From positions 16,784,523-16,848,522 of the forward strand of contig NC_069006.1 in assembly GCF_001194135.2 (NCBI RefSeq): a stretch of 64,000 bases of DNA, in the 5' to 3' direction. A model generated the notes under the pieces. That model was not told where the DNA came from and ran no database searches. It saw nothing but the letters and a program-made list of their open reading frames with translations. Position numbers and translations under genes: made by a program. The stretch is from Octopus bimaculoides. Lineage: Eukaryota. How positions within the stretch are numbered: the stretch's first letter is position 1; each line of letters begins with the position of its first letter. Shown here in pieces: positions 1,791-57,485 of this stretch.

Positions 1791-3892
1791 TTACCTAAGT
1801 CCACTGGGTATGGAAAGCTGACACTTTAGTATATTTTCCACTGAAGTTGCTATATTACACATTATGATGATTGATTTACAATAAAAGACTGAATCAATGA
1901 TTTGAATGCAAGTAAAATCTCTCTCACCTGTATAATGAGTTGTAAAATTCTCTATGGATGTTATGTCTCCTAAAAGGATCTGGTAGTCACTGTCAGGAGT
2001 GTAGTAAGAGCTGGGATCAGTGTAGTCTCTTAAATTTGCTCCTACTTTTTTTTCAGTTTCTTGAAATATTTCTGAAAGATATGTTTTTGACTTGATGTTA
2101 TTTAAATTTTAGTCTGGACAAACATTTATTTCTACCAAATATAGCTGGGACTGTTGACATCTCCCCCTTGTAAAGCCAACTTCACACAGGAATTTGAATT
2201 CAAAGCATAAAGTAGTGTAGCTAAATACCTTGGAACCTACCCTGAAATCCAATTCACTCATCTCCCTTTCTCTTGTACAGTCTATATGCCCTACCCTGGG
2301 GCCCACACTAATTATAATAGATATGTTATCATTTTAATCAAAGTCGTTGTCATGGTCATCACCGCCATCTGCCGCAGCAATGACACAATCATCAATGTTA
2401 CCATCACATCCTCATCATCAACATTTTATATTCATTTTTCCATACTGATATAGGCTGGATGGTGTCTTACAACATATTGTTACCCCACAATGGTCCTTTG
2501 TCTTCCATCCCACTATGGCAATTTATCTTGCAGTGTGTGAATACAAAGCAAACTGCCAGTGGCAACTTACCATATTCAAACTGATAAGAGGTATTGTATT
2601 GATCCACCAGCTTGAAATGTTCGAATATGGCTGGAGTATCTGAAATATCTGTAACAGAAAACAATAGCAAGATTATGTTTAAAGAATAATGATATAATCA
2701 CATCTGCAATGCAGAAGGGATCAAATAGATCATGGCAAATTAACTTGGAAGCACCTCCACATATCTTTGGCTAAACAGATTACTCGAAAAAAAAATGTAT
2801 TCCAGCTAGTTCAACTGATCAGTACAGCAGTCCATACAGAGTCAAAGAGTTGTTTACTGGTCTTGTCTTGGGCATCCTGTAAATCTTGTGTATGCAACAA
2901 AGGTATGTCATTTATCGAACAAAAACAAATGGATAATTCAAAACATCACTACACACATTTCAGTAGCATAGTATATTCACAAATATTAAGTCTGTTACAT
3001 AACTTAGATTACATTAAATAAATCCTAGTGTTATATAACCACTCAATTTCATCAGGTATTCTGTCAAATATTTTGGTGAAATACAACGAATCTATGAGGG
3101 GAGGAGATATTTCTAACCAACTAGAATGAAACAAGTATTTTCAATGTAGAGTGGAGATATTAAAATTGGCAATCAATTAAACAGCATACTTCCAAAGGTA
3201 ACTAAAGTAATGTATGCTCATCCTAGAGTAGAGTGGTCAAGCATATTCAGTTCATATGTTGGAATATATAGCTAAGTCATATTTTGATGGATAGTTAATG
3301 ACTAGTAGTAAACAATACAATTACCTCCAAAACAAGACAGCCAACCAATGCAAATTGACTGGGAAAGAAGCTCTTTGTATATATCAACCGATGCTGGTGT
3401 GTTTACATCCCCGTAACTTAGCAGTTTGGCAAAAGAGACCAACAGAATAAGTACTAGGCTTACAAAGAATAAGTTCTGGGGTCGATTTGTTCGACTAAAA
3501 GGCGGTGCTCCAGCATGGCCGCAGTCAATTGATTGAAAGAAGTAAAAGAATATATTAATGTTATGGTTTTGCAACCATAATATACTACCAAGTATCTTAA
3601 ACTTTTGAAAGTCGATAGTGTATCTTACTTTTTGTGTCAGCAGTGCAATGTTCTCATTTTTAACTTTGATCTTAATAGAATTTGTATAGAATTCAGAACC
3701 AGCTCTGCAAGTTATGACATTTCATATACGAATGCTATTATGACATTTCGTAAATGATACAATCAAGGATAGAAAATATAGGTAGGTATTTTCCTCTCTT
3801 CAATCACATTGTCTACTTAAAAGTATTCATATACAAAACATTGTAACTTGCAGTGTTGACTCTAAATTCTATAGAAGATCAATCGAGTTAAA

Positions 3893-3940
<48 letters not shown>

Positions 3941-6407
3941 ACAGGAAGAAATATAAATATATCTATAAAATTTATAAATGTTTCATATGCAAAAATCTGG
4001 CAGAATAATGAGACAAAAGATGTGAAAATAATGATGAAGATGATGATGAAGATTGTGGTGATGGTAGTGACTAGCAGGTAAGTAAGAATAATAAGAAGGT
4101 CTTTGCCTTACCATCTAAAGCACTGTATTTAGTAAGGTTGTTGTTATTGTTCAACAGTCCTGCAGGTATTTTTCTTTTACTTTTTGCTTTTGGCTGTGTA
4201 GTATCATGTTGGATTTTAACATTCCCAGATTTGTAGATTTCGTATGCAAGGAGATTCCTGATAATAGATGTGGTAAATGTACTGGTAATTATAGCTGACA
4301 TAACATTAGGGACAATGTCAGTAAGATAAAAATCCATGGAAAATGAAGATGACACATCTGTTCATCTCTCATGCTCCCACAAATTTACTTTTCCGCCCAC
4401 ACCAGTTCTCTTTATTCACCTTCCTAGAATTTATGATTATGCCCTGGCACATTGTCCTTCTCTTCCAACAGAGACAACTAGGTTTCCCCCACTACAGCAA
4501 AGCACTTATTGTTGTCCTCCAATCATACTTTAACATCTCATCACCTGGCATAAAGAAACCTCCCTCAATAGTTGGCATGGACTTGTCTCTCTAGGTTCTT
4601 GATGCTTAGTTTGAAGCCTGCTAACTTGTCTCAGTTGATGTGTCTTCCTAAATACCTATGTTACTTCTCTACTATGTAACTAGTGGAGGCGCAATGGCCC
4701 AGTGGTTAGGGCAGCGGACTCGCAGTCATAGGATCGCGGTTTCCGATTCCCGTTGTGAGTGTTTATTGAGCGAAAACACCTAAAGCTCCACGAGGCTCCG
4801 GCAGGGGATGGTGGCGAACCCTGCTGTACTCTTTCACCACAACTTTCTCTCACTCTTTCTTCCTGTTTCTGTTGTGCCTGTAATTCAAAGAGTCAGCCTT
4901 GTCACTGTGTCACGCTGAATATCCCCGAGAACTATGTTAAGGGTACACGTGTCTGTGGAGTGCTCAGCCACTTGCACGTTAATTTCACGAGCAGGCTGTG
5001 ACAGAGTACCAACAACAACAACTATGTAACTGATCACTTCAATCTTCAAAGTATCTAAGATCATAACAGGGATATTGTCCACTTATGCTTCAGACTGATC
5101 CAAATTGATCAGAGCTCCACCAAAGCCAGCTTTCATCCCTACCCTCTCTATGATGCATCACATAAGGTGGAGGTTGTCAAGGATAGATCTGTGTGAGATT
5201 GCACACATTTGTGCTTCCCCAACAGCAGTTTTCCATGATTTATACACAATTTCTTCACAAAAATAACAGACCTGATGTCAAGTGTGGCTTACCCAGCTGA
5301 CAGCCATAACAACAACAACAACAAAACGGACAGACAGAAATAATGGGGTACCTTTCATAATAGCTTCGGGCAACATGACCTTTGTATTTCTGTAATGTAT
5401 TTGTTACCTCACGGTATATAACAGCCCACTTCCTTTTATGTGTTACCTGTAATGGTAGATATTGGTAGAACAGTAGGTAAATGAAACATATATATACATA
5501 TACATATACATACATTTGTCTCTCTCACCAAGGTCAGCGGCTATCGGACGCCGACGAAGGGAAATAACCCTGAAATCCGGATCCGTTCGTGCTGCAGATG
5601 TTGGTGAGAGGGATAACTACCCTTGGCAAACAGGACACAGTCGTGTGTCGATAAGCCAGCTGGAGGAGATGTCCTCCTGGGGCTGAAAGCAACAGTAACA
5701 TCCACCCCTAGGGGTCAGCCACACTTAAGTGGCAATATACTACACTTTATCGTGCAGTTACTGTTAATACTTCATTTAGAGAATTAACATTGCTTGTTTT
5801 CACCTTTTCGATATCAGTGAAGAATTTCACTTGAAAAGAAGATATAAGATTGCCAGGTTTTTGTNNNNNNNNNNNNNNNNNNNNNNNNNNNNNNNNNNNN
5901 NNNNNNNNNNNNNNNNNNNNNNNNNNNNNNNNNNNNNNNNNNNNNNNNNNNNNNNNNNNNNNNNNNNNNNNNNNNNNNNNNNNNNNNNNNNNNNNNNNNN
6001 NNNNNNNNNNNNNNNNNNNNNNNNNNNNNNNNNNNNNNNNNNNNNNNNNNNNNNNNNNNNNNNNNNNNNNNNNNNNNNNNNNNNNNNNNNNNNNNNNNNN
6101 NNNNNNNNNNNNNNNNNNNNNNNNNNNNNNNNNNNNNNNNNNNNNNNNNNNNNNNNNNNNNNNNNNNNNNNNNNNNNNNNNNNNNNNNNNNNNNNNNNNN
6201 NNNNNNNNNNNNNNNNNNNNNNNNNNNNNNNNNNNNNNNNNNNNNNNNNNNNNNNNNNNNNNNNNNNNNNNNNNNNNNNNNNNNNNNNNNNNNNNNNNNN
6301 NNNNNNNNNNNNNNNNNNNNNNNNNNNNNNNNNNNNNNNNNNNNNNNNNNNNNNNNNNNNNNNNNNNNNNNNNNNNNNNNNNNNNNNNNNNNNNNNNNNN
6401 NNNNNNN

Positions 6408-6454
<47 letters not shown>

Positions 6455-9021
6455 CACACACACATACACACTCATATACATATATATACACTCACACACA
6501 AATACAAGTATATAGACACACCTACACACAAGACATGCATACACTGCATATGCACACTTACAATCATATGCATACATCCACACTATATTCATGTTCGCAT
6601 ACACAAAAACAGGTGCATATATACTCAACCCTTCATACATGCCCACCACAGTCATGATTTACATCTACTTACAGTGCTATAACCGCCTGCATCCAGTACC
6701 ACACAGTAGAACTGGTATGTATCAATAGTGATATTTTCCCACATTGCAACCTCAAGGTGCATGTTGTTGGAAGTCAGGAACTGTTTCAAATCCACTGTGA
6801 AATCTGCTTCATGTCTGTGGTAATTCTACAATGATAATAATAATTATTTCTATTACAGGAACAAGGCCAGGAACTTTCAGGGGAGGTGGTTTAACCCTTT
6901 TGATACCGTATTTATTTTGAAATGTTTTGTGTTTCTTTCAAGTATTTTAAATATAAAAAAGAATTTAGTAAAATAACTTAAGTTATCATTAAGCTGATGT
7001 TAGGAACATAAATTGTGACTAAGGTTTGGTGGAAGATTTTAATTCAAAACTTATGAAAACAAAAACATTTGTACTACAGAGCCAGGGGCGGTTTCAGCCA
7101 GGTTGGTAACGAAAGGGTTAATCGATTACAACAATCTCAGTACTTGCTTGGTACTTTATTTTATTGACCCCTGAAGGACAAAAGGCGAAGTTTATCTAAA
7201 TGAAATTCAAACTGAGAACATAATGATTCAGAAGAAATATTATTAGGAAATTTGTCCGATGCTCTGATTCTGTTGATTTCCTGCCTATACAGATAATAAT
7301 CACAATAATTTCGTTTTGGGATTTGGTTTGCAAGATTTTTTATGTGATTTCGTGCAACCTGTCTTAATGGACAGTCAAGACTATTGATAAGGTTGCAAGA
7401 CGCAACGAAAATTTTAGGAAAATAAAAAAATAAGTGGAAATTTTACCGGTGAGTGTGTAAAAATTTTAAGGCACAATAAGAAAATGACTCTCCCCAGACA
7501 CAACAGAATCACAATGATTGTTTGTAACATAAATATAAGAAATTTGAGAGGTGAGATTAATCAGTTAAATCAAGCTAGTATTTGACTGGTACTTTATTTT
7601 ATTGATGCAGTGGAATTCAAACTCAGAATGTGAAGTGCCAGGAAAACACCATACAGTATTTTGCCTGATATTCTGATGATTCTGCCAAATAAAAACAACA
7701 GTTTTCTTTTTCTCTTTAGTATTTTAATATAGGAACAAGTCCTAAGGTGGCAAACCATCAGAATCATGACCACACTGGGAAAAATGCTTAGTGGCATTTT
7801 GTCCATCCTTACATTCTGAGTTCAAATTCCACCGGGTTGACTTTGTCTTACATCCTTTTGGGGATTGATGAAATGAGTACTTTGTGCCTAGAGTAGAAAA
7901 GATTTATTTTGTAGCTTCAAGATTTTGATGATGTGATTGTTTATTTTTAGAATGACATGATAGGGTAGGTGTGAAAGGCCAGATCTGGGTGGCTTAAATA
8001 TAAAACAAGTAGAATGGTTGGGCCAGATATGACCAGTTTAAAAGCTAAAGGGTTAAACAATAACAAAACCAACATCAACAGCTGCACCAATAACAGCAAC
8101 AACAATAGCAATAACAACAACAAGAAAAACAGAGGGACAGCTGAATAGGAAAAAAGAGAGAAAATAGGTGGGGGGAGGGGAGAGAAGAGCGACCTTATCA
8201 CCTGATAACAGAAGTTACCTCTATATCTTGTGTAAGTTTTTCTTCCAAGCTCATGTTTAGTGTGGGGTTCCTTGCAAAGGGAGTCATTACTGTTGTACTA
8301 TTACTCTGATTCACCTTGATGTTCTGGTCATTACACGGGTCCTGTGGTGTCTTTGGGTAGACAGATGCATCATAGACCGTAGAACTGCCTACAGATAGAT
8401 TGATAGATAAGTAGGTACTTAGTTTGGTAGGTAGCTATACAGGTAGGCAACCAAGCAGACAGACACACACACACACATACATATATAATCATAATCATAT
8501 ATGTATATCATCGTCATTGTCCCCCTGCATGTACCTTGGACAAGTGTTTTCTACTATAGCCCTAGGACAACCACAGACTTGTGATTGAACTTGGTAGACG
8601 GAAACTGCAGAGTTGTTCATCAGAAAATGACTGTAAAACATGTTCATAAAGAAATCTTATTTGCATCATATTCCTCATGTGCCGATTCTGCCCATAAGAA
8701 AGGAACAAATAATACAATGTGGCTACAGGTCATAACACCCAGGCAACACCTAGGTGCATTGCTAGTGAATTCTTTTATAAGAATTTATCAAGTAGCTAGC
8801 GTGAAAAAAACCTCATAAGGGAAAAATCCATCATTTATTCCCCAAAATATATTTATTTATATAAGGGCATTACTATACATGAATGCCTCACGCTAAGAGG
8901 GACTCTAAGGTCAAACTACCATAATTTCCTTGCGTTCGGTAAAAATGTGTTTATTATGGTAGTTTGACCTTAGCGTCCCTCTTAGCGTGAGGCATTCATG
9001 TATAGTAATGCCCTTATATAA

Positions 9022-9062
<41 letters not shown>

Positions 9063-12000
9063 ATGGGCTTCTTTCAGTTTCTATCTACCAAATCTACTTG
9101 CAAGGATTTCATCAGCAAGGGAATAGTAAAAGACACTTAGTGCTGCACATTAAGACTGAACCCAAAGCCACACAGTCATGCCTATATATATATATATATA
9201 TATATATATGACAAACAGAGAGACTGATAGACAGAAACACACACACATGTATATATGTGTGTATGTACAGACATCACCAACTTCATCTACCAGGGCAGCG
9301 TTATTTCTACAGAGGGGAATACTAAAGTAGATGTCAACTCCAAAATCAGATGTGAAACAGCAGTGTCCCCACGAATGAATAAAACCAGGGTCAGTACTTC
9401 AATTAGCAGCCAAATGAAAATCTTGCTCTACCAGAGCACTGTCCTGCCAACAGCAGTCTACAGAAGAGAAACTTGGAAACAACTGCCAAGATCACTCAGA
9501 GGTGGAATGCATCCTCCAATGGTATCTAATCAGAATACTCAAGAACATCCATAGCATCCTGAGAAAAGCCAATATGAACAGCCGGCAGGAGACTGTGGCA
9601 GAAGGAAGAGTGAGACTTGCAGGTCATGTTTTCTGACTGCCAGAAGAAAGAATACCCAAGACATTATACAATGGGTACCACTAGAAAGACAAAGGAAGAG
9701 AGTGAGACCTAAGAAGACATAATCTACCATCTTCAAGGAAGATCTGAGGCAACTACCACCACACAACACACAACACAACTACACACAACACAGCTACACA
9801 CACCACCACAACACAATTACCACCAGTACCACACACCTTGTTCAACTCACCTGATCCAACAGAACTACTCTCTATATATTCAGAGACAATGTTTTCTTCA
9901 CTATCAAAGAAATGTTGCCTCTTATCAAGAGAGTGACTACAATGGGTATAGCCTTCTTGTACTCTTATGTCCTGAAGTTTTGCTGCCACTGTAACTGCAG
10001 CTGCTGTTGTTGATGTTGCTGTCACTTGTGTCAATCTGGAGAGTTTGGGGTTATCACAACTAAATTCCAATACAGGTTTATCAAAGAAACTATGTTCTCC
10101 TCTTCTGGCACTTGAAGTCATGACTCTATTGTTATTGATGTTATTCTTGCCTATTTTGGTACTGTGTTCTCTTCCAGTATGATTGAAGACACATCTTTTC
10201 AGTCTGACAGACTTGGACAACTTCTGAAAGATCTCTGCCTCTTTCAGGGCCCCTTCAATACTGTTTCCTCTGAATATGCTTTTACGACCCTTATTTTTAG
10301 GCATATACTTCTGTTTGACAATGTAATAAAATAAGTTATAAATACAAATATAATATAAATACAAATATAAGAAGAGAAATTACATATTGTTTGCTCATAT
10401 AGTCACAAGACGAGAAATTTAGATGCAGGATCATTTGTCTATTGAACTGACTTCAGTACTAGTGTTTCGTTTTGTAGAACATGGAAGACTGAAAGCACAG
10501 TGGACCTCAGTATGTGAAGAATTGGAGCAAATAAAGCAAGGCATTTTGGCAGACACTTTAGCAATTTAACCAATCCAATGCTTTTATAACAAGTCACAGG
10601 TATATATAAATATGATAAAATAAAATGACACAGTTCTATATTTAAGAGATGAGGAATTATGTAGCCTGACTGGCCTTCGTAGGGTTTTCGAGCGAGATCG
10701 TTGCCAGTGCCCCCTGGACTGGCTTTTGTGCGAGTGGCACATAAAAGACACCATTTCGAGCGTGGCCGTTGCCATAACCGCCTGACTGGCCTTCGTGCGG
10801 GTGACACGTAAAAGTACCCACTACACTCTGAGTGGTTGGCGTTAGGAAGGGCATCCAGCTGTAGAAACTCTGCCAAATTAGATTGGAGGCTGGTGTTGCC
10901 ATCCGGTTTCACCAGTCCTCAGTCAAATCGTCCAACCCATGCTAGCATGGAAAGCGGACGTTAAACGATGATGATGATGATGATGATTTACATTTGATGG
11001 ATATTTGTCCTCATCTTGGCGTAGTGATTAAGAGCGCGGGCTACTAAACCCAAGATTCTGAGTTCGGTTCCAGGCAGTGACCTGGGCGGTGGCAGCAGCG
11101 ACGATGACGACATCGAAAAATACCTTAGGAATGAGAACCCAGGTTCAAAATTTCCCCAAGATACCTGATGAAGGCTGAAGGGTATATCAGCCGAAATGTT
11201 GTGTTAGCAACAAACAAGATGAGGACAAATATCCGTCAAATGTAAATAATGTAAAATAAAATGATTTCTAAGAATGGCACACGGGGTACTTAGTCAATTC
11301 TATCAATCCTACAACTTTGTTGGTACTTCATTTTATCAACCTCAGAAGTTTTTATTCAATTTAAATATAACAAAATATAATATTATATAGAATATAACAA
11401 AACATGGTTGAGAAGCAAACATAACCATCCCTGAAACTATAACGTGTGTGTGTGTGTGTGTACACAAATAATAGGTCAGTGTAAGCATTAAAATATATAT
11501 TATAAAACCAATGAACAAAAAATTTCATCATCATCATCACCATTTAGCATCTATTGTCCATGTTGGCATAAGTTGGACAGTTTAACCAAGGCTGGTAGGC
11601 TGAGGGGCTGCATCAGACACTAGTCTTATTTGGTATGGCTTCTATGGCTGGATGCCCTTCCTAATGCCAACCACTCAGAGTGCAATGGATGTTTTTACGT
11701 GCTACTGGCATGGGTGTCAGTTTGCATGACACCAATATCTGCCATGCCTAAGATTTTACATGGCTTGATAGGTCTTCTTCTCATAGTATATTGCTAAATG
11801 TCTTGGTCTTTTGTCATTGCCTCCGTGAAGCCCAGCACTCAGGTGCTTTTTACATGCCACTGACCACAACTATGATTTCACTTAGGTTGATGGGTCTTCT
11901 CAAGCATGGCATATCGCCAGAGGTCTCGGTCACTAGTCATTGCCTCCGTGAGGCCCAACATTTCAAGATCATGCTTCACCACCTCATCTCATGTCTTCTT

Positions 12001-15000
12001 GGTCTCCCTCTTCCACAGCTTCCTTCCACTGGTAGAGATCAGCATCAGCACTTCTTCACACAACTGTCTACATCCATATGCATCACATGACCATACCAAC
12101 AGTTGTCTCTCTCTTGTACATTACATCTGATACCTTTTATGCCCAGCTTTTTCTCTAAAGACGCTTATACTGTCGAACATGCCCAATGACATTGCACATC
12201 CAGCGAAGCAAACTAGCTTCATTTCTTTCAAGCCTGTGCATGCCCTCAGTAGTCACAGCCTATGTTCCACTGCCATGTAACATGGCTGTTCTCACACAGG
12301 CATCATACAATCTGCCTTTCTCTCTGAGAGAAAGGCCCTTTGTTACCAACAGAAGTAGGAGCTCTCTGAACTTTGCCCAACCTATTCATATTCTAGCAGC
12401 TATGCTCTTTGAGCATCCACTTCTACTACTGACTTGGTGACCTAGATAATGGAAGCTATCAACTACTTCTAGCTTTCCCCCTTGGCATTTGATGAAGTCT
12501 ATTTTCTACCACACATAGAAACTATTTTCCCTGTTAACCTTCCTCTGGTATTGCTGCACCTCTCATGTATCCATTGCTTACAGCAGGTACATTTTATGGA
12601 ATTTCTACTTATGCCTTTCCTACAGATTGAGCAGGTCCATCTACCTGAAGGGGTTTGTGATTTGTTTGCCTTCCTACTTGCTAAGAATTTGGTTTTTGAT
12701 AGGTTAACTATAAGGCCCTTCAACTCTAGACCTTGGTTCCACACCTGAAACTTCTCTAGTTCTGGAAGTGATTCAACTATAAGAACAAGGTTGTCAGATA
12801 GAAGCTTCCAGGGACAACCTGTCTTGAAATCCTCTGTTATTGCCAGGAGGACTATGATGAACAAGAGGGGGCTGAAGATTAAACACCTACTTGTACTCTG
12901 AATTCTTCACTATACTCATTACCAACCCTCACTTTGCTGACAGCATCCCTGTACATGATTTGTACAGCTCTCACCAACCATTTGTCTATCCCTAGTTTCC
13001 ACACTGACCACCAGATTAGGGATCAGAGCTTTCTCCATGCCAACAAAAGCCAAGTACAGAAGTTTGTCTTTGGCTATGTATTTCTCCTGTAGCTGCCTTA
13101 CCAGAAATATAGCATTAATGGTACTTTCTCCTTGGCACAAAAGCAAACTGCATCTCATTTAGACTAACTCTCTCTCTCTAATTAGTTCAGTTATGACCCT
13201 CTCCATGACTTTCATCATGTGATCCAACAATTTCAAATTTTGTGTCACCTTAACACTTAAATGGAGTCTTGACTTTTTAAATGCTAGTCCTTCATTGGAA
13301 GTTTATAGAAATAAAAGAGGAGACTGAAAGAGAAAGTGGCTGGAAAAAGATAAAAAGAACATCTTCCAACCTGAATCTTAACCCCCTCTCTTTTTCTACT
13401 GAAGAGAGAAGAAAGGCATATAAATATTATGGTAAGATAAGAAAAGTCTGATCTTTGTTTGCAAACAAAAATGAACAACTGCAGACATAGTCTACTCAAC
13501 TTTCATTGATCAGTTTAGCAAAGACTTTTACTTAGAGAAAACAAATGACAAATAATTTTGAGCCAATATAATTTGAATAAATAATAAAAAATTATGGGAG
13601 CTAAAGAAAATAACTCAAATGTCTTCCTTATTGTTGTATTGTTGTTACTGTTGTTTTTCTTACCTTTGAAACTAGTGATAGAGGGTTGCTATCTAACAAG
13701 TCAATACAGCTGCTTGAAATCCAAGCATGAGAGCGAGGTGTGCCCAAGAACTCCACATGGTAACTGTCTACAACAATCTCTTCCACTTCCTGGTGTTTTC
13801 TTTGCTCTTCTTCCTGGTACTCAACGTATCCGTTACAGAATGGATCAAAGCTTACAACAGCTGGCCACCTGAAATAATTATCCAGAATAAGAAAAGTTTT
13901 CATCCTTGCACTCCATCAACTAGCACAGCTATCACTTCACAAAAGTCTTTTCAATAAACTTCAGTCCCATTTTGATAAATTCAAGTTCCACTTCAATAAA
14001 TATGAGTCAGTTCAATAAACTAGTGTCTGTCATAATGGTGAACAGGAACACCACTTCAATAAAGAAAGCACCATTTCAATGAATGTGAGTGCCCCAATTT
14101 GATAAACTTGAGTGCCACTCCAAAAAACATAAATGTCAACTTCTGAGTATCAGTAAGTACTCCAGTTGTACAGACACATCCACACTCAAATGTACACAAA
14201 ATGTTGCAAATACAGATAGATAAACAGCAAACACAAAAATTGGATACACCTATAGAAACAGTAAACAAATGTAGAAAATGGATTATTTAGAAGCAAGAAC
14301 TATTAAGTAATTTGAAGTAGTGCTTTGTCCAGTATCTGCACTAAAGTAATAAGAAGCACATTGTTTACAAAGTACATTTTACAATTTTTACGATGTTTAT
14401 AGCCTTATTTTAAACTTTTTATTTTATTGTTAATATAATTCATTAAGAGAGTATTGTAGTTCGCTTGAAGCATTGTGTATTGTTTGTAAAGAATAAAAGT
14501 TTAGAATGGTACAACAATGCACTATAAAACAAGAAATGAACTATATACCTGTTGTAATTTGGTTATCTATAGTCCTATGATATTTCGGAATTACAATTCC
14601 TTCTTCAGAAGTTTATAGCAGAGACTCCAGCCAAGAAGATCTGAAGAAGGAATTGTAATTCCGAAATATCATCGGACTATAGATAACCAAATTACAACAG
14701 GTATATAGTCCATTTCTTATTTTATAGTGCATTATAGTGCATAATAATCTGGATCTCAGTTCATCCTTCATGTTGCAGCTAGATTTGTTAGCCTCTTGTT
14801 TCATCACAACCCCTACCACCCTCCAGCAGATAACAGGATTGTGAGACAAACGTCACACATGAAATATCATCATCATCATCTAACGTCCGTTTTCCATGCT
14901 GGCATGGGTTGGACGGTTTGACTGAGGTCTGGAGAGCCAGATGGCTGTACCAGGCTCCAATCTGATCTGGCAGAGTTTCTACAGCTGGATGCCCGTCCTA

Positions 15001-17159
15001 ACGCCAACCATGCCAAGAGTGTAGTGGGTGCTTTTTATGTGCCACCAGCACAGGAGCCAGTCTGGCAGGCCTGGCATTGATCACATTCAGAGAGTGCTTT
15101 TTACATGCCACCAGCACAAATGTGTATAAATGTGTATGTGTGTGTGTGTGTGTGTGCATGATATATAATACATTTTAAACCTTACCAACAGTAGCCTGCC
15201 ATGATGGCCATTACCAAATCTCCTGGGGTTAAATATGGATATACAAACACCACTCCCTTTTTCCACATAGTTTTCTCAATGGATTCAAAATTATCTTCTT
15301 CGATATTGCAGTTATTCTTTGCCTGATCTTTGTTGAATTGGCAAATCCACTTCTTGTCATCATCACACCATCCATGAACTTCCTGTTTGGTTACAGATCT
15401 CCATTTTAAGCAGCTATCACATTGGATCCAAGACATTCCTATCATCTGGGTTGGTAAATGACAAACAGAGATGACGGTTAATTAGTGACATAAATGATGG
15501 TGTTGGTGGAGGATGTGTTAGTGATAATGGGGATGGGAACAATGGTTGTATGTGAAGGTAGTAGTGCCGTTATAATTGTTGTTGTTAGTGGTGGTGGAAC
15601 AACATTAATACATATTTCATCAAACATACCCCTTTTTCTTCAGACCCTTTCAGGGATAATTGTCTTCTCAGTTTTAATTTAGAACCTTTATCATCCTTCC
15701 TTGACTTTTTGACAGTTGGAGCATCACTCCAAGCCACATTTTTCCTTGATTTTTCAGCAGCAGAACGCAAATTAAGAATCTGTTCCTGGAGCTCATTGTT
15801 GAGGTTTTCAAATAAATATGGACTATTCAAGACTTGTTTCATGAAAGAAGAAAAAAAGAGATAATAAAAATGATTAGTCCAAGGGTAGTACAAGGGAGGG
15901 GTGTTTAGTCATTTTATATTAAACACCACCTCAGTATCTGACTGGTGTTTATTGTATTGACCATAGGATCCCCAAAAAAGGGTGAAGGATAAAAAGGTGA
16001 TGTTGATTTGAACTTAAAACATGACAGAAAGAATGTAACTAAATGCTGTAATGTCTTCTTCTTTCTTCTTTTGACCTTTCAAAGCCTAGCCAGGCTCATG
16101 GGCCCGGTTTCCCGGTTTCTATGGCGTATGTGTTCCCCCCAGCTGGACGGGACGCCAGTCCATCGCAGCGTTACTCAAGAAAGAGGAAGAAAGAGAGAAA
16201 GTTGGGGCGAAAGAGTACAACAAGGGTCGCCACCCCCGTCCCCTGCCGGAGCCTCGTGGAGTTTAGGTGTTTTCGCTCAATAAACACTCACAACGCCCTG
16301 TCTGGGAATCGAAACCGCAATCCTCCGACCGCGAGTCTGCTGCCCTAACCACTGGGCCATTGCGCCTCCACTCAAATGCTGTAATGTATTTAGTGCAATT
16401 CTTTACTGTTTATATTAGTACTCAGCCCCCCTCTCTCTCTCCCTCTACCTACACCTCCTTCTTTCTCTACTCTTGCTCTCCCTCCTCCTTTCTCTACTCT
16501 TGCTCTCTCTTTCCCTTTCTCTATGTTTCTAAATTTTCTCTCTTCCACTACTTTTCCTCAGATGATCAACTTTCATTCTATAAATAATTTGTCTGTTAAT
16601 TCACTCATCTCTTGCTCTGGCTATCCATGCCTCTGTTTAGAATCAACTGTTTCTATAATCTCTCGTTTCATTTATTAGGAAGCTGAAAACATTTACTCCT
16701 TAAAATATTGCATCTAGAGAAACTTCTAAAATATTGTATCTAGAGGAAGTGAAAGGGTCTCTTTCTTTTTTAACATAGAACATTGATTTATTAGATCTAT
16801 TTTTCAATACTGAATGTTATTGTTGACTAATTAAAGTTAGATTAGGAAAACAAAGAATATTTTCATGCAACATCAGACGCTCACTGTGATGAAATAAACC
16901 TTCAGGCTGTAGTTTGTGATATAAAAGTGTTTTTATTTTTTCTTTAAACACTTAAGTATTAATATTAATTAACATAAATCTGGAACTAGGCGTAGGAGTG
17001 GCTGTGTGGTAAGTAGCTTGCTTACCAACCACATGGTTCCGGGTTCAGTCCCACTGCGTGGCATCTTAGGCAAGTGTCTTCTACTATAGCCTCGGGCCGA
17101 CCAAAGCCTTGTGAGTGGATTTGGTAGACGGAAACTGAAAGAAGCCCGTCGTATATATG

Positions 17160-17192
<33 letters not shown>

Positions 17193-17488
17193 TTGTCCCC
17201 CCCCCCAACATCACTTGACAACCGATGGTGTGTTTACGTCCCTGTATCTTAGCGGTTCAGCAAAAGAGACTGATAGAATAAGTACCAGGCTTACAAAGAA
17301 TAAGTCCTGGGGGTCTCGACTAAAGGCGGTGCTCCAGCATGGCCACAGTCAAATGACTGAAACAAGTAAAAGAGTAAAAGAGTAACTAACTTAATTTTTC
17401 TTTTTGTTTAATGCCTAGTCAAGGGAGGAAGTATTACAGACTTACCTGTTTTCTTCCAAGATCGAGTGACAATTTTCTTAAGGTCCAT
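1791..17488 (-). CDS. Zinc finger CW-type PWWP domain protein (ZCWPW1/ZCWPW2-like) with an additional ARID domain. Exons 5'->3': 17488-17446, 15832-15630, 15445-15186, 13868-13664, 10310-9851, 8388-8219, 6825-6673, 5446-5352, 4257-4112, 2648-2571, 2071-1928, tentative last exon 1840-1791 (about 668 aa)
   Basis: All listed junctions are GT-AG and phase-compatible, giving one open frame. CW finger WIQCDSCLKWR...WICQFNKD...NNCNIEED. PWWP GYCW|WPAVV...YHVEFLGTPRSHAWI resembles ZCWPW2 YHIEFLGDPHSRSWI from memory. The start codon and last exon are less certain, and ZCWPW1 versus ZCWPW2 orthology cannot be decided here. Confidence 0.88.
4112..6825 (-). CDS. Three exons (6825-6673, 5446-5352, 4257-4112) encoding an ARID/BRIGHT domain
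   Basis: Spliced peptide HEADFTVDLKQFLTSNNMHLEVAMWENITIDTYQFYCVVLDAGGYST|VTHKRKWAVIYREVTNTLQKYKGHVARSYYER|NLLAYEIYK follows the ARID pattern (F..DL..F; D.Y..Y..V...GG...V....KW..I; YY...LL.YE). Phases 0/0/2/1 are consistent. Confidence 0.8.
4682..5020 (+). mobile_element. tRNA-headed SINE family C
   Basis: Head GGCGCAATGGCCCAGTGGTTAGGGCAGCGGACTCGC, (CAA)n tail and 11-bp TSD ACTATGTAACT. Confidence 0.88.
5865..6407. other. Assembly gap; others at 20942-21615, 22330-22339, 49739-50507 and 61737-62339
   Basis: Runs of N. Confidence 1.
6895..7117. mobile_element. TTAA-flanked MITE (piggyBac-type ends) inserted into a SINE
   Basis: TTAA|CCCTTT...AAAGGG|TTAA. The flanks rejoin into the SINE family seen at 33715-33930. 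Confidence 0.75.
8848..9030. repeat. Near-perfect foldback palindrome (78-bp arms, 27-bp spacer)
   Basis: 8848-8925 versus the reverse complement of 8953-9030, one mismatch. Confidence 0.9.
9290..9750 (+). mobile_element. RTE-clade LINE C-terminal fragment
   Basis: DVNSKIR...SISSQMKILLYQSTVLPTAVYRRETWK resembles the RTE post-RT motif K..LY...VLP.LLYGCETW. Confidence 0.7.
10670..10985 (+). mobile_element. 3' end of the RTE LINE (or a SINE sharing its tail). Related copies at about 14868-15115(-), 28180-28410, 34470-34650, 35920-36210, 48415-48485, 49690-49738, 52340-52645, 53790-53975 and 61110-61280(-)
   Basis: Recurrent ...GGTTGGCGTTAGGAAGGGCATCCAGCTGTAGAAAC...AACCCATGCTAGCATGGAAAGCGGACGTTAAACGATGATGATG, homologous to the tail of the LINE at 11520. 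Confidence 0.85.
11158..11205 (+). ncRNA. Minimal type-I hammerhead ribozyme-like motif (probably CpG-decayed)
   Basis: gatac CTGATGA a GGCTG-loop-CAGCC GAAA TG TT gtgtt: core, 5-bp stem II, and 5-bp stem I with two G-U pairs. Confidence 0.6.
11520..13170 (-). mobile_element. 5'-truncated, degenerate RTE-like LINE (RT remnant plus 3' UTR and (GAT)n tail)
   Basis: Peptides QGESTINAIFLVRQLQEKYIAKDKLLYLAFVGMEKA and TGCPWKLLSDNLVLIVESL...GLIVNLSKTK are RT motifs with frameshifts. The tail (CAT)n on the plus strand is at about 11525. Confidence 0.85.
13664..13868 (-). CDS. Exon encoding the PWWP domain core
   Basis: WPAVVSFDPFCNGYVEY...VDSYHVEFLGTPRSHAWISSSCIDLL. The phase-2 acceptor completes the W-W-P motif, and the donor is AAG|GTAAGA. 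Confidence 0.93.
14516..14732. repeat. Foldback palindrome (arms of about 93 bp, 30-bp spacer)
   Basis: 14516-14609 versus the reverse complement of 14640-14732, with a few mismatches and one indel. Confidence 0.9.
14638..14673 (+). ncRNA. Minimal type-I hammerhead ribozyme-like motif inside a palindrome
   Basis: gat CTGAAGA a GGAAT-tgta-ATTCC GAAA TA TC atc: palindromic ATAT stem III, a UC cleavage-site dinucleotide and a 3-bp stem I. Confidence 0.55.
15186..15445 (-). CDS. Exon encoding the zf-CW domain and the start of the PWWP domain
   Basis: MIGMSWIQCDSCLKWRSVTKQEVHGWCDDDKKWICQFNKDQAKNNCNIEEDNF...LTPGDLVMAIMAGYCW. It has four CW cysteines, acceptor ccaacccag and donor GTAAG. Confidence 0.93.
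16084..16372 (-). mobile_element. SINE sharing the family C tRNA head but with a different 3' body; the same 3' end recurs at about 22530-22590(+)
   Basis: The head is near-identical to family C. The body contains CTGCGATGGACTGGCGTCCCGTCCAG and ends GAAACCGGGCCCATGAGCCTGGCTAGGCTTT. Confidence 0.8.
16988..17383 (+). mobile_element. tRNA-headed SINE family A (about 400 bp, internal (TA)n/(TG)n). Other near-full copies at 25200-25602(-), 34995-35395, 39721-40125(-), 42455-42854 and 57487-57898(-), plus many fragments
   Basis: A-box/B-box-like head GGCTGTGTGGTAAG...GGTTCAGTCCC, shared body CCTTGGGCAAGTGTCTTCTACTATAGCC...GGAAACTGAAAGAAGCCC, and tail GAAACAAGTAAAAGAG. Confidence 0.9.
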
Positions 17489-19066
17489 ATGGTCACAGCT
17501 CACTGTACTATAATATCCTGACTGATCTCTGCACAGAAATTGAGTGAAATATTAAGATATCATCATTGTCATTATCGTCACTGACATCAGATTCACCACC
17601 ATCATCACTACTATCATCACCATCCTCCAGTTTAACACTACCACCTGGATGCCTTTAATAGAGCACACTACAGTATTAGAGATAATTTGTGATGCTGTCA
17701 GTTCCTGCACCAGCACAGGCGGGTAGCCGCTAGAGCAGCAAAAACAACAGCCAAACGAAAGTTCCGTCAGCTTTATGGTGTATCCTCAGATTTGTTTCCG
17801 ACATATATGATTTCATGTGGCAGAAGAGGTACCACAATATTGAAAACATTTGAAAATTTACTCGTTCACATAGCTGAGCAATATAAATTTCAAATTCATA
17901 ACAAACATTTATGCAGTGACACTTTGTTTTACATCTATTACACTAATTTTTTTTCGTTTTTGAGCTCAGGGTCAAACGCTTTACTTTGACCAGAAATAGT
18001 AGGGATCACACGGTTATAATTCCTAAGGCTTATAGGGTATCAAAAGCAGCCATCCCAACCAATTCATCTCTGATTTTTTTCAGATTATGCTAATAATGGT
18101 ACATTTTACCTGTTTCTGTCACTGAACTGTGGCCATGCGGAGGCACCAACTTTTAGTCGAAAATAAACCTAAGGGTTTATTTTTTTTAAAGACCGGCACT
18201 TCAGGTCAGGAGGAATAACTTCCAGAAATAGTTAAGTTCTCCAACAAAGAACAGATGCAACCAGTGAAAATTTTAAAAATAGTTCAAGGATTCTCCATTT
18301 GAGTATCCCGAGTGAGCATATGCACACAACCACATATACATATGGAATATATGTACGTACACTCATATAAAAAAATAGTAATGCAACATTGTTCTCTCAT
18401 GACATGCACACCTAGGACTACAATGTATCAATCAATTCAGATAAGAACAAACACTAAGAGCTGTTTTCATTTAAACAAAACAGTCTTGCAACTTTGTTAG
18501 TGACTGACTTCAATATTGCAAAAGGGAAAACTTGAAATAAATTCAAAAGAAACATATTATATGCGCAGGAGTGGCTGTGTGGTAAGAAGCATGGTTCCGC
18601 GTTCAGTCCCACTGCGTGGCACCTTAGGCAAGTGTCTTCTTCTACTATATAGCCTTGGGCCAACCAAAGTCTTGTGAGTGGATTTGGTAAACGGAAACTG
18701 AAAGAAGTCCATCATATATGTATATATATATATACTCTTTTCCTCTTTTACTTGTTTCAGTCATTTGACTGTGGCCATGCTGGAGCACCGCCTTTTAGTC
18801 GAGCAAATCGACCCCAGGACTTATTCTTTGTAAGCCTAGTACTTATTCTATCAGTCTTTTTTGCCGAACCGCTAAGTTACGGGGACGCAAACACACCAGC
18901 ATCGGTTGTCAAGCGATGTTTGGTGGGGGGGTGACAAACACAGACACACAAACATATACACACACATACATATATATATATACATATATACGACGGGCTT
19001 CTTTCAGTTTCCGTCTACCAAATCCACTCACAAGGCTTTGGTTGGCCCTAGGCTACATATATATAC

Positions 19067-19885: not shown

Positions 19886-22288
19886 GTAAATTTTGATCCC
19901 TTTTTACCCGCAAGATTTTTACCAAGAAAAAAAAAAAACGCGGATTTTTTTTGCGTGGAATCAAGTACCCTGACCTCCTAATATACTGCAAACCCCTTAT
20001 TTTTGTTCGGAAAAAAAGGAAGGGGTGGGGGTAAAAACCGCCCCCTCCTCATCCCGGAATCATTGGAAATTCTTTTCTTTTCTTTTTTTTTTTGTTGAAT
20101 GAATTCCGGTGACCTAATATGTCACAAAACCCTTTTTGGGGGTCCGGAAAACGAGGTGTGATGGAATGGAACCCTCGGAAATTTTACCCACTCCCAACAT
20201 TTTACAGACGTGCATTTTCCAGAGTGTTAATTAAAGTCGTAGTGTGTGTGTATGTATATGATAGCGTGTATGTATATGTAGACAGGTAAAATTCACCGAC
20301 AATGTACTACTTACCTCTTTGCTGTCAAATAAATGGATTAATTCTCGACTAAATATTTTCAGCTTTATACCAGCATTTTAGGGGGAAAAGACCCAAAAAT
20401 CATTCACGCCCAAACTAATTTCTGAGTGAATGGGGGAAGAGAGACAGAGAATAATAATTGCATATTTACGGCTGAACTTTTTCAAAATTAAAATTTTGTT
20501 TTTCAGTGTACGTGGAAAAATACGGATATTGAGAATATGGGAAAATTCTTTTCTAATTTCTCAAATTTTCTATGAAAAACTCCAAACTAACTGAAACAGT
20601 AAACGTCGATATGCTAAAAACAATAGCCAAATGCCTGGAGAATTTTTGTGTTTGTGTGTGCGCGTGCAACAATTTCAATGACTTTTTTCTAATAAGCAGA
20701 GAAAGTAGAGAAATATGTTCTACATACCTGTCATGTACGTCGGTTTTCGTGTCCTTGAAATTTTTGAGGATGATGGAAAAGCCGATGCACCCACTAAAAT
20801 CACGAGATTTTTGGGGATGAGGCTAATGCAGATTCGCACTTCCCCTACAAAAATGCAGTTCTCTGAAAAAGTTTATTCCGACATGTAAAACCTGGGAATC
20901 CAAATAAACTTTTTCAGAAAAAAGCATTTTTCTAGGGGAGANNNNNNNNNNNNNNNNNNNNNNNNNNNNNNNNNNNNNNNNNNNNNNNNNNNNNNNNNNN
21001 NNNNNNNNNNNNNNNNNNNNNNNNNNNNNNNNNNNNNNNNNNNNNNNNNNNNNNNNNNNNNNNNNNNNNNNNNNNNNNNNNNNNNNNNNNNNNNNNNNNN
21101 NNNNNNNNNNNNNNNNNNNNNNNNNNNNNNNNNNNNNNNNNNNNNNNNNNNNNNNNNNNNNNNNNNNNNNNNNNNNNNNNNNNNNNNNNNNNNNNNNNNN
21201 NNNNNNNNNNNNNNNNNNNNNNNNNNNNNNNNNNNNNNNNNNNNNNNNNNNNNNNNNNNNNNNNNNNNNNNNNNNNNNNNNNNNNNNNNNNNNNNNNNNN
21301 NNNNNNNNNNNNNNNNNNNNNNNNNNNNNNNNNNNNNNNNNNNNNNNNNNNNNNNNNNNNNNNNNNNNNNNNNNNNNNNNNNNNNNNNNNNNNNNNNNNN
21401 NNNNNNNNNNNNNNNNNNNNNNNNNNNNNNNNNNNNNNNNNNNNNNNNNNNNNNNNNNNNNNNNNNNNNNNNNNNNNNNNNNNNNNNNNNNNNNNNNNNN
21501 NNNNNNNNNNNNNNNNNNNNNNNNNNNNNNNNNNNNNNNNNNNNNNNNNNNNNNNNNNNNNNNNNNNNNNNNNNNNNNNNNNNNNNNNNNNNNNNNNNNN
21601 NNNNNNNNNNNNNNNTTAATTCTCAACAAAATATACTTCTTTTCTCCACTAATTAATCGATGTTCTCGGTAAGTATGGGGGCTAGGAAAAAATAAAAGAG
21701 GCATTAAGAAGTTGACGTTAAGAATTGCTTTAACAGAAAATGAAGCTGTAAGAATTAACGGGGAAATTGTGTGTAAGAATTAATAGCAGACGTATCCAAT
21801 TTAAGAAAAGTGAAGATAAAAGCTAAGTGAAGGAGTATGGAATAAGTAATTGTTATACGCTTATAGAAAATCAATTTATATTATAGAATAGATACATACC
21901 TGTTGAAGACGAAAATGTATGTGAGAGCTATTGTGTATAATCATAGAGAAACTGAAAGACATGAAATGGACGTGTGTGTATGTGTGTGTGTTTTTTGCGG
22001 CTAATTTGGCGGGAGTTTTGCAGTCAGCAGGAGGTGATTTGTGTTTTATCTCTCGATCAATGGCCGGACAAGTGAAAATATTTTTTTAATATGTGTTTTG
22101 GGGAAAGGGGATCTTTTGAAGTGTGCGTCAAATGAAAAGAGACATGGACAGTTTTATGACTGAACTTCTATTGAAGTTGGCGTGAGATGGAAGAATTGAT
22201 GTGCGTGCGTATGTCTGCGTGTGTGTGTGTGTGTGTATGTTTGATGGGGTGTGCGAGACAGAGAGAGTAATGTTGATGGTGTGTGTGT

Positions 22289-22329
<41 letters not shown>

Positions 22330-22886
22330 NNNNNNNNNNAGAAAGAAAGAGAGAGAGAGAGAGAGAAAGAAAGAAAGAGAGAGAGAAAGAAAGAAAGAGA
22401 GAGAGAGAGAAAGAAAGAGAGAGAGAGAGAAAGAAAGAGAGAGAGAGAGAGAAATAACTGAAATTTTTTATTTAATTTTTGTAGTGAGTGAATGTGTGAG
22501 TGATTGACAGAGAAAAACCAAGAGAGAGAGAGAGAGAGAAACCAGGAAACCGGGCCCATATGCCTGGCTAGGCTTTAAAAGGGCGAAAAGAAAGATGTAT
22601 GCATAAACATAAACACCCATTATAAATTTTGATTTGTCCCTGTAATTATCAGTAGAACCCCTACCTATATTTAGTCAAGGCTTCCTCCTTTGCCTCACAC
22701 TGCTTTATCAATCATTATTCAAACCGGATACAGACATCACCACCATCGCCCCAGCTAATCTGTGGGATTGCATGAGACAGACCATCTGCTGTTTCACCAT
22801 TCTCTGTATACAGTCAATAAGTGAGGACATATTTTTACCATGTGAGTTGTTATAAGTATTTGCTCTTGCTTTATGTACATATATGA

Positions 22887-23620: not shown

Positions 23621-24183
23621 TGGCCTCTGCTCATGTTTCAGGAGTGTTCACTTATGTTTTTTTTTTAATGTTGGGCATGTAAGTAAAGGAAACCTGTGTG
23701 TCTGCCTGAAGTGCTTGTCTACTATCCTAAGAAATATCCTTCCCACACAAGTTTTAACGTTGAGGGAGAAGGGTGGGGCAAACGAAATGACCTTCCAGTG
23801 GCACTTCTTTTGTAAGTGCTAGGGCCTGGTATATAGGAGATGCGGCCCTTAAACCCACTGGATGCCAGGGCCTTGTTATATTAGGGAGTCATGATATCGA
23901 AAATTTCTTGATTTGAAGACAGGTTGGAGATCCACTTGTTAACATTCTTCTCTAGGTTCCTGAACAAGATCAGTGGGTAGCAGAAGGCTGTGTTGATGTA
24001 GGGTAGCCTTTCATTTGGTTTGCGATAGGGCCAGTATGGACTGGAGCCCAAGTCTACCATGATGTTACCACTAATTTGCTACCACTACCATCACCACCAT
24101 CATATCCCTACCCACCATTCTTGCCTGTTTTCTGTATTCTTGCCTGTTTTCTTTTTTGCTTCTCTCTCACACAGTCACAGATT

Positions 24184-27100: not shown

Positions 27101-27543
27101 GGGTTAAGGGTGTTGAATGAAACACCCATGTTTCCAAAGGTGAATTATCCAAACCCCAAAGAATTCCTCTTGACACATGGCTATGATGATCCCCCACTAC
27201 TTCTGCTCATGATCAGAGATGCACATATCGTCAGCCACCAAGGGACATGCTCGACTGGTTAAGGTCAAGCAACTGACAAGCAAATCTGTGGTACTGAGCA
27301 GAATATTTTCTGTAGCCCATCTTTTATAACAAGACAAAACAATGTACATGATAACACTTCCAATCAACTAAAGATTCTTCAAGGCTGTGCCCCAGTATGA
27401 CCACAGTCTGATGACTGAAACAAGTAAGGAATAAAAGATAAAATATGTGTGTATGCATGTGTATTTATGCATGTGCATGTTTGAGATAGCATTGTCCTGT
27501 TGGTACTATCAGCACCATCAACTAGAGTCAGACAGAAGGAGGA

Positions 27544-27586
<43 letters not shown>

Positions 27587-57437: not shown

Positions 57438-57485
<48 letters not shown>

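Follow-up and report, generated by a model that had tools for sequence, protein, structure and literature searches.

A probable ZCWPW2 orthologue in Octopus bimaculoides with a CW-PWWP-ARID layout that is likely ancestral to the lineage

Mouse ZCWPW2 reads the H3K4me3 and H3K36me3 marks of PRDM9, is required for double-strand breaks at PRDM9 hotspots and has HORMAD1, IHO1, MEI4 and REC114 as partners; its cage residues are W15, E61 and F63 in the CW finger and W94, W97 and F126 within PWWP (bioRxiv 10.64898/2026.05.22.727067). ZCWPW2 has been described as lacking DNA-binding ability, and the mouse protein also binds promoters and affects transcription (PMC12828234). Here, we analyzed a window of 64,000 nucleotides from Octopus bimaculoides (contig NC_069006.1 of assembly GCF_001194135.2, positions 16,784,523 to 16,848,522 of the forward strand, with coordinates below counted from its first letter) and describe in it a minus-strand gene that encodes a zf-CW finger, a PWWP domain and an ARID, in that order. 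All functional work that we know of has been done on mammalian proteins that have no DNA-binding domain.

We derived the exon borders by hand from the minus-strand DNA and called domains with Pfam at its curated gathering cut-offs. The gene has 11 exons within the window (17488 to 1928) and an open frame of 652 codons; all but the first have an AG acceptor, the donors of all 11 are GT, and all of the phases are compatible. Matches above the gathering score were found in single reading frames for zf-CW (15185-15481, 40.3 bits), PWWP (13631-13915, 27.6 bits) and the N-terminal half of an ARID (6655-6825, 28.4 bits, profile positions 2-51). The spliced protein carries zf-CW (PF07496) at residues 88-133 (36.8 bits against a cut-off of 27.5, 4e-9), PWWP (PF00855) at residues 157-263 (45.9 bits, 8e-12) and ARID (PF01388) at residues 453-536 (50.1 bits against a cut-off of 24.1, 3.6e-13), the last of these covering profile positions 2-89 of 89. 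The near-doubling of the ARID score and the complete coverage of its profile are seen only with the three ARID exons joined in the way suggested by an earlier note on this DNA, which was made from the letters alone, and they support those junctions directly. The same note had placed CW, PWWP and ARID exons on the minus strand; the single-frame matches, the canonical borders and the spliced protein agree with this placement, and the full-length profile match bears out its call of an ARID.

Within the CW finger, Cys 91, 94, 117 and 128 and Trp 88, 97 and 115 are all present, and the closest solved structure is that of human ZCWPW2 (4o62, E = 4.7e-7), with the human ZCWPW1 CW finger reaching only E = 0.61. 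The PWWP domain adjoins the finger directly and is followed by a disordered linker of ~170 residues and then by the complete ARID, which is preceded by a conserved helix. An AlphaFold model gave per-residue confidence (pLDDT) values of 74-92 for CW and PWWP (80-92 for PWWP) and 85-95 for residues 435-540, and in this model the ARID has its helical fold, with six helices across residues 438-539 (pLDDT 85-95). A Foldseek search with the whole model matched the PWWP1 domains of NSD2 and NSD3 (target TM-score 0.7-0.8); the top 50 matches were all PWWP, and none was an ARID. When the octopus ARID was searched against PDB as a single sequence, Lid/KDM5 scored best (E = 5e-8 to 1e-6), and a family ARID profile matched every solved ARID subfamily about equally (9e-19 to 1e-13, ARID5B best). 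We considered a KDM5 origin of the ARID and rejected it, given that the family profile fits ARID5B, ARID3, KDM5 and ARID4 about equally. A Pfam search of the spliced protein, at E values up to 1, returned only zf-CW, PWWP and ARID, with no Tudor/RBB1NT, chromo-barrel, JmjN, JmjC or PHD domain. After the ARID, orthologues have an acidic tail that ends in a short conserved helix (consensus EMQALQ..ID.L).

Orthologues in two other octopus species join the same parts. The closest database protein is that of O. sinensis LOC118768051 (XP_036369696 to XP_036369699, "uncharacterized protein"), at 84% identity; CW, PWWP and ARID are present in all four of its RefSeq isoforms, which differ only at the last junction, and in tblastn searches the protein breaks at the exon borders of the window. 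All of the exons are present and intact in the gapless O. vulgaris genome, with identical AG/GT borders; in the model deposited for that species (CAI9741206, "finger CW-type PWWP domain 2"), exons 6-9 are left out and a duplicated CW exon is included. The earlier assignment of the ARID exons to the same gene as CW-PWWP thus holds in the O. sinensis isoforms and the O. vulgaris exons. We conclude that the locus is in all likelihood one protein-coding gene of at least 12 coding exons, 11 of them within the window and the last just outside it, and that the protein is ~700 residues long with its terminal exon included.

To place this architecture among animals, we searched 1.84 billion representative proteins, clustered at 50% identity, with HMMER, and profiled the best 150 of 294 matches. 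CW-PWWP is combined with an ARID in ~30 of these best 150 representatives, usually with the C-terminal motif kept, and CW-PWWP-ARID proteins were found in at least 16 species. They include a nemertean (Tubulanus), an annelid (Owenia), a bivalve and gastropods (Mizuhopecten, Haliotis, Physella and Elysia), hemichordates (Saccoglossus and Ptychodera), echinoderms (Acanthaster, Amphiura and Apostichopus), a cephalochordate (Branchiostoma), hagfish (Eptatretus) and cnidarians (Montipora and Nematostella). In a family alignment, Pfam recognized the ARID in all 20 members, PWWP in 19 and zf-CW in 17, the misses being N-terminally truncated or partial models. All three domains were confirmed by Pfam in hagfish, Nematostella, Montipora and Branchiostoma, and only CW and PWWP were found in the ZCWPW2 of lamprey, stingray and koala; a partial Argonauta protein has an ARID without CW or PWWP. 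In databases these proteins go under the names "uncharacterized", "Zinc finger CW-type PWWP domain protein 2" (Mizuhopecten and hagfish) and "ARID4B-like" (Physella). A word-indexed protein search with the CW-PWWP peptide gave no match, and a search of this kind that started from the family alignment brought up just the two octopus proteins and a single ARID2-like protein.

This distribution suggests that CW-PWWP-ARID is probably the ancestral layout of the ZCWPW2 lineage, spread from cnidarians to hagfish and missing in those lamprey and jawed-vertebrate proteins that were tested. On the simplest history, the ZCWPW2 lineage would have had its ARID in the eumetazoan ancestor, and most invertebrates, amphioxus and hagfish would have retained it. 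The earlier note had left the choice between an ancestral architecture and a lineage-specific fusion. The former is supported by the same domain order in Cnidaria, Lophotrochozoa, Ambulacraria, amphioxus and hagfish ZCWPW2, and the latter is at odds with an architecture that extends from cnidarians to hagfish. The accompanying statement that vertebrate ZCWPW1 and ZCWPW2 are without an ARID is right for the lamprey and jawed-vertebrate proteins tested and for the papers searched, and wrong for hagfish.

We also built a neighbour-joining tree of 127 CW-PWWP regions, drawn from the best 150 matches to the octopus protein. Vertebrate ZCWPW2 and all of the ARID-bearing proteins, octopus included, were split from a ZCWPW1-like group (for example, koala ZCWPW1 and Styela "ZCWPW1-like") in 92 of 100 bootstrap replicates, and family profiles detected an ARID in none of the 72 sequences of the ZCWPW1 clade. 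The ZCWPW-like identity first given to the gene is upheld by this tree, which puts it in the ZCWPW2 branch and not in that of ZCWPW1. We consider it likely, from these comparisons, that the octopus gene is an orthologue of ZCWPW2.

Our best reading is that the octopus protein may be a three-point chromatin adaptor, contacting two histone marks and DNA and carrying a C-terminal partner-binding helix. The octopus CW finger would bind H3K4me3 and the PWWP domain H3K36me3 on one nucleosome, as in mouse ZCWPW2, while the ARID would contribute a DNA contact, probably with linker or nucleosomal DNA and with low sequence specificity. Such a contact would let the protein bind more tightly, or stay longer, where chromatin carries both marks, and the C-terminal helix motif would recruit partners. 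The coupling of mark reading to DNA binding and the relevance to recombination targeting that the earlier note put forward are likewise hypotheses. The three-residue aromatic cage of the PWWP domain is intact, with Y167, W170 and F209 aligned to mouse W94, W97 and F126; W88 of the CW finger aligns with mouse W15, and an ungapped alignment of its C-terminal wall (EEDNF) to human ZCWPW2 pairs F135 with F63 and D133 with E61. In KDM5A, Lys152 is a DNA-contact residue (PMC10578193). Arg525 of the octopus ARID appears to correspond to it, and Lys or Arg occupies the position so matched in 19 of 20 family members.

Several observations weigh against this reading. When the family alignment is lined up on the EED motif, the third CW cage position is Asn134, with Phe135 one position later, and the H3K4me3 specificity of the octopus finger could differ. 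The net charge of the ARID, which is +4 to +10 in most relatives, is near neutral in Octopus and Argonauta (0 to +2; about +1 in the window). Between the window and O. vulgaris, the ratio of nonsynonymous to synonymous substitution rates (dN/dS) is 0.22 for CW, 0.30 for PWWP, 0.47 for ARID and ~0.7 for the linkers, and the ARID is thus evolving faster than CW and PWWP. Together, the near-neutral cephalopod ARID and its faster evolution make strong DNA binding in octopus uncertain. Given the ARID-less models described below, the ARID form may not be the sole or main isoform. The tree is poorly resolved inside the ZCWPW2 group, where vertebrate monophyly reached 10 of 100 replicates, and its sample of best matches to the octopus protein is a biased one; the weak resolution and the origin of the sample are why we hold ZCWPW2 orthology as likely and not more firmly. 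Finally, the gene model for this species was built from genomic DNA and orthologues only, and its last exon lies outside the window.

The same charge and rate values raise the alternative that the cephalopod ARID no longer binds DNA and is kept as a structural or protein-interaction module, which would leave a plain dual-mark reader like mammalian ZCWPW2. Its charge of 0 to +2 against +4 to +10 in most relatives and its dN/dS of 0.47 against 0.22-0.30 for the reader domains speak for this; however, the fold-defining residues and Arg525 are kept, the domain is followed by a basic tail (KAKSKRK), and its dN/dS is lower than that of the linkers. We regard such a loss of DNA binding as possible but rather doubtful. 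A more distant proposal would make the protein an ARID4- or KDM5-like cofactor that acts in chromatin or transcription generally, with no meiotic tie, and one could cite for it the NCBI name of the Physella orthologue, the position of Lid and KDM5 as best single-sequence PDB matches of the ARID, the solved ARID4A chain that holds an ARID and N-terminal sequence (6l87 and 7v8n), and the promoter binding and transcriptional effects of mouse ZCWPW2 (PMC12828234). Yet the Pfam results include none of the additional ARID4 or KDM5 domains listed above, the family ARID profile fits all ARID subfamilies about equally with ARID5B ahead, and the CW-PWWP part groups with ZCWPW2, so we think it quite unlikely that the protein is a cofactor of this kind.

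Two further alternatives concern the structure of the gene. If the donor of exon 6 were unused, a stop would follow nine codons on (DIEVTSVIR*), and this, like the absence of an ARID from the O. vulgaris annotation CAI9741206, could be taken to mean that two adjacent genes have been wrongly joined, one of them a short CW-PWWP gene that stops after exon 5 or exon 6, the other an ARID gene. We find this very improbable. The first ARID exon lacks a start codon, and its acceptor AG is the end of an in-frame TAG immediately before it, so it must be internal and follow an upstream phase-0 donor; exon 6 provides one 1.4 kb upstream. Moreover, single proteins have the CW-PWWP-ARID order in at least 16 species of four superphyla, a 2.2-kb Logan contig of the coral Montipora holds the whole CW-PWWP-ARID frame intron-free as 564 uninterrupted codons, the four O. 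sinensis RefSeq isoforms all connect the parts, and even the ARID-less O. vulgaris model proceeds to exons 9b and 10, which lie downstream of the ARID. A subtler alternative, which is compatible with the adaptor reading and would refine it, is that exons 6-9 form an alternatively spliced cassette; the gene would then yield an ARID-bearing isoform as well as a short one resembling jawed-vertebrate ZCWPW2, the short one being possibly the main product. Exons 6-9 comprise 564 bases, a multiple of three, and can therefore be skipped in frame, with exon 5 ending and exon 9b beginning in phase 1. Three independent annotations show an in-frame deletion of exactly the ARID block: O. vulgaris, which goes from exon 5 to exon 9b; Lottia XP_009047408, as compared with a close relative (P0021); and Myxine "ZCWPW2 homolog isoform X2", as compared with Eptatretus A0A8C4RD50. 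These ARID-less models may be annotation errors or real isoforms. On the other hand, the ARID is retained in all four O. sinensis RefSeq isoforms, the O. vulgaris model is of poor quality in other respects too, its duplicated CW exon among them, and exon dropping is frequent in older ab initio models, and we put the cassette forward only tentatively. Equally speculative is its extension to history, in which the ancestral eumetazoan ZCWPW2 would have been an adaptor for H3K4me3 (CW), H3K36me3 (PWWP) and DNA (ARID) with an alternatively spliced ARID cassette, and the short, non-DNA-binding ZCWPW2 of jawed vertebrates would have arisen through fixation of the ARID-less isoform by exon loss. If this were true, hotspot reading in most animals would be coupled to direct DNA contact in a way that is invisible in mouse and human models.

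The N-terminal and reader portions of the gene are encoded by coding exons 1 to 5, all of them, like the exons that follow, on the minus strand. Exon 1 (17446-17488) starts with the ATG at 17488, encodes MDLKKIVTRSWKKT and ends at a GTAAGT donor in phase 1; it is matched by the N terminus of O. sinensis XP_036369697, and its O. vulgaris counterpart lies at 20028-20070 of the locus sequence from that species (L002). Exon 2 (15630-15832) encodes N-terminal sequence in which a helix is predicted and a basic stretch occurs, and its AG/GT borders are kept in O. vulgaris. The entire zf-CW finger (88-133) and the start of the PWWP domain (GDLVMAIMAGYCW) come from exon 3 (15186-15445), the donor of which interrupts the Trp codon of the CWWP motif. 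Exon 4 (13664-13868) encodes the PWWP core (WPAVVSFDP...YHVEFLGTPRSHAW) recognized by Pfam, and exon 5 (9851-10310) the C-terminal PWWP helices and then the disordered linker, ending at a GTGAGT donor in phase 1.

Exon 6 (8219-8388) opens the 564-base block and encodes linker and then the helix that enters the ARID (SLEEKLTQDIE); the SKEEKF..D motif of this helix is kept across the family alignment. The ARID itself is divided among three exons. ARID exon a (exon 7, 6673-6825; NYHRHEADF...LDAGGYST) ends at a GTAAGT donor in phase 0 and is matched in O. sinensis; ARID exon b (exon 8, 5352-5446; VTHKRKWAVIYREVTNTLQKYKGHVARSYYE-) follows a CAG acceptor in phase 0 and contains Arg525; and ARID exon c (exon 9, 4112-4257; -RNLLAYEIYKSG) completes the domain and adds the basic tail. 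Exon 9b (2571-2648; DISDTPAIFEHFKLVDQYNTSYQFEY), which has 78 bases and phase 1 at both ends, was located by tblastn with the O. sinensis protein and is shared with O. vulgaris, and exon 10 (1928-2071; EIFQETEKK...ENFTTHYT) ends at a GTGAGA donor at 1927 in phase 1. The exon model of the earlier note stands except at this end of the gene, where it missed the exon at 2648-2571 and ran on past the donor at 1927 to a stop at 1791; 1927-1791 is non-coding intron read-through. That model had looked phase-consistent because skipping the 78-base exon preserves the frame.

In orthologues, exon 10 is spliced to a terminal exon (NLNVPDIG...LQNQIEDLDFMICL, ending QIEDLDFMICL). We considered a terminal exon inside the window and rejected it: a three-frame reading of 1-1930 and tblastn found none in 1-1928. 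In O. vulgaris, 2.3 kb separate exon 10 from the terminal exon downstream of it, which directly follows a short CT-rich tract. At the corresponding end of the window, the last intron contains a tandem repeat (1-545) with a 38-42 base unit and a 274-base higher-order unit, purine-rich on the plus strand, which reaches the left edge and represents, in expanded form, the O. vulgaris tract just described. Since the terminal exon is absent from 1-1928 and the repeat fills 1-545, the gene runs off the left end of the window, and by comparison with O. vulgaris the terminal exon should lie just left of coordinate 1, beyond the repeat.

The intron between ARID exons a and b contains an assembly gap (5865-6407, N). 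We examined whether this gap could hide an exon of the CW-PWWP-ARID gene, and this was ruled out by the reading frame, the continuity of the profile and two orthologues. The a-b junction reads GGYST|VTHKRKW, which fits both the ARID consensus and O. sinensis GGYNN|VTEKMKW with no gap, and the ARID profile and the O. sinensis and O. vulgaris orthologues all cross it (phase 0/0) with zero residues missing. The O. vulgaris assembly has no N at the locus, and its ARID exons a and b are ~2.9 kb apart with no coding sequence of the gene between them. Given the in-frame junction, the unbroken profile and the O. vulgaris interval free of coding sequence, the gap contains intron only; judged from O. 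vulgaris, it is probably closer in true length to 2 kb than to the nominal 543 bases.

Additional copies of two exons were seen in O. vulgaris. The CW exon is present there in two tandem copies (L002 21363-21611 and 22364-22627, 94% identity to the protein), as compared with one in the window (15186-15445); the extra copy, which gives the deposited model two CW fingers, may be a genuine duplication or one created by the assembly. An inverted, 19-codon partial copy of ARID exon b (VTNTLQKNRGRVARSYYER) lies on the minus strand at L002 37474-37530, ~2.6 kb downstream of the real exon. We found no second copy of exon b in the window by tblastn with the O. sinensis protein, and no further search was aimed at one. 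Between exons 4 and 5 of the window gene, at ~11760-13160 on the minus strand, broken frames resemble by eye the reverse transcriptase of a non-long-terminal-repeat retrotransposon, followed by a Cys-rich tail; Pfam gave no reverse-transcriptase match for these frames at E <0.01 and only weak C1/PHD-like matches.

Upstream of the gene, exons of a DUF4735-family gene lie on the plus strand at ~24000-27920, one of them with a Pfam score of 26.6 bits, below the cut-off of 31.2. This neighbour stands head to head with the CW-PWWP-ARID gene both in the window and in O. vulgaris, which places the 5' end of the latter gene near 17.5 kb. The RefSeq gene range of O. sinensis LOC118768051 is ~100 kb and overlaps two other genes, an STN1-like one and, at its start, one for myosin-XVIIIa, and the coding exons of O. 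vulgaris span ~23.5 kb; an untranslated exon far away, or an annotation join, may account for the long range. The window as a whole is eukaryotic and rich in microsatellites and in repeats resembling short interspersed elements (SINEs). One SINE-like repeat (motif FDCGHAGAPPF... / PTKALVGPRL...) occurs in many copies on both strands (3305-3721, 16990-17400, 18560-19055, 25164-25620, 39519-40137, 57426-57934 and others) and is scattered through the O. vulgaris locus too. Two other minus-strand frames were noted. A 314-codon open frame at 54064-55005 is very acidic, with Glu/Asp runs and no Pfam match, and may be an exon of another gene; a short frame at 29353-29607 scores just below the cut-off for a zf-CCHC zinc knuckle (20.7 bits against 20.8) and is probably a retroelement gag remnant. 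Four more assembly gaps lie outside the gene (20942-21615, 22330-22339, 49739-50505 and 61737-62339), two of them between the CW-PWWP-ARID gene and the DUF4735 gene.

The finding concerns domain architecture, as predicted from sequence, and that architecture is already implicit in RefSeq, UniProt and Pfam records. The earlier note had allowed that it might be common and already described; it is indeed common and recorded in RefSeq and UniProt with Pfam matches, and we found no paper that describes it. An ARID in ZCWPW proteins goes unmentioned in the literature that we searched, including studies of vertebrate co-evolution (PMC8892340) and of PWWP architectures (PMC3457860), the 2026 papers on ZCWPW2 function (bioRxiv 10.64898/2026.05.22.727067 and PMC12828234) and a 2026 cnidarian survey, the searches of which used CW and PWWP profiles only. 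If the ancestral and widespread form has an ARID, surveys that use CW and PWWP alone overlook a conserved third module. In addition, loss of the ARID in lamprey and jawed vertebrates, together with its retention in hagfish, would be a dated event to set beside the changes seen in PRDM9 and its partners, and invertebrates and hagfish would permit a direct test of DNA contact in hotspot reading. Literature searches for PRDM9 in octopus, cephalopods or molluscs gave no relevant match. We consider the architecture to be of moderate interest for research on recombination targeting.

Compared with known ARID proteins, the octopus protein is similar in parts only. The ARID of KDM5/Lid is its best single-sequence PDB match, and octopus keeps the basic residue that appears to correspond to K152; KDM5/Lid differ in having JmjN, JmjC and PHD domains, and the preference for KDM5 is lost with the family profile. 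ARID4A and ARID4B (RBBP1) share an ARID, and the solved chains 6l87 and 7v8n contain it together with N-terminal sequence that we take to be a PWWP-like domain beside the ARID. Unlike the octopus protein, these proteins have Tudor and chromo-barrel domains and no CW finger, and their ARIDs are no more similar to that of octopus than those of other subfamilies are.

The ZCWPW proteins resemble it more fully. ZCWPW1 has the CW-PWWP pair and reads the same two histone marks; it differs in belonging to a separate clade, in carrying CW in the middle of the protein and in its length of 500-1300 residues. Vertebrate ZCWPW2 (mouse and human) is like the octopus protein in its N-terminal zf-CW followed directly by PWWP, with PWWP cage residues conserved, whereas the jawed-vertebrate and lamprey proteins are shorter, at ~250-390 residues, and have no ARID. 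A C-terminal helix motif seems by eye to be shared (mammal KEIDALMSEF, Myxine HEMDAFIDENQF and invertebrate HEMQALQ..ID.L), and the match of the family C-terminal motif profile in vertebrate ZCWPW2 is nonsignificant. Hagfish ZCWPW2 (Eptatretus burgeri A0A8C4RC31 and A0A8C4RD50, so named by the source) has the same three Pfam domains in the same order, although at 348 and 427 residues it has a much shorter PWWP-ARID linker than the octopus protein does. O. sinensis LOC118768051 has all three domains as they are found in the window gene, and it has the terminal exon in addition.

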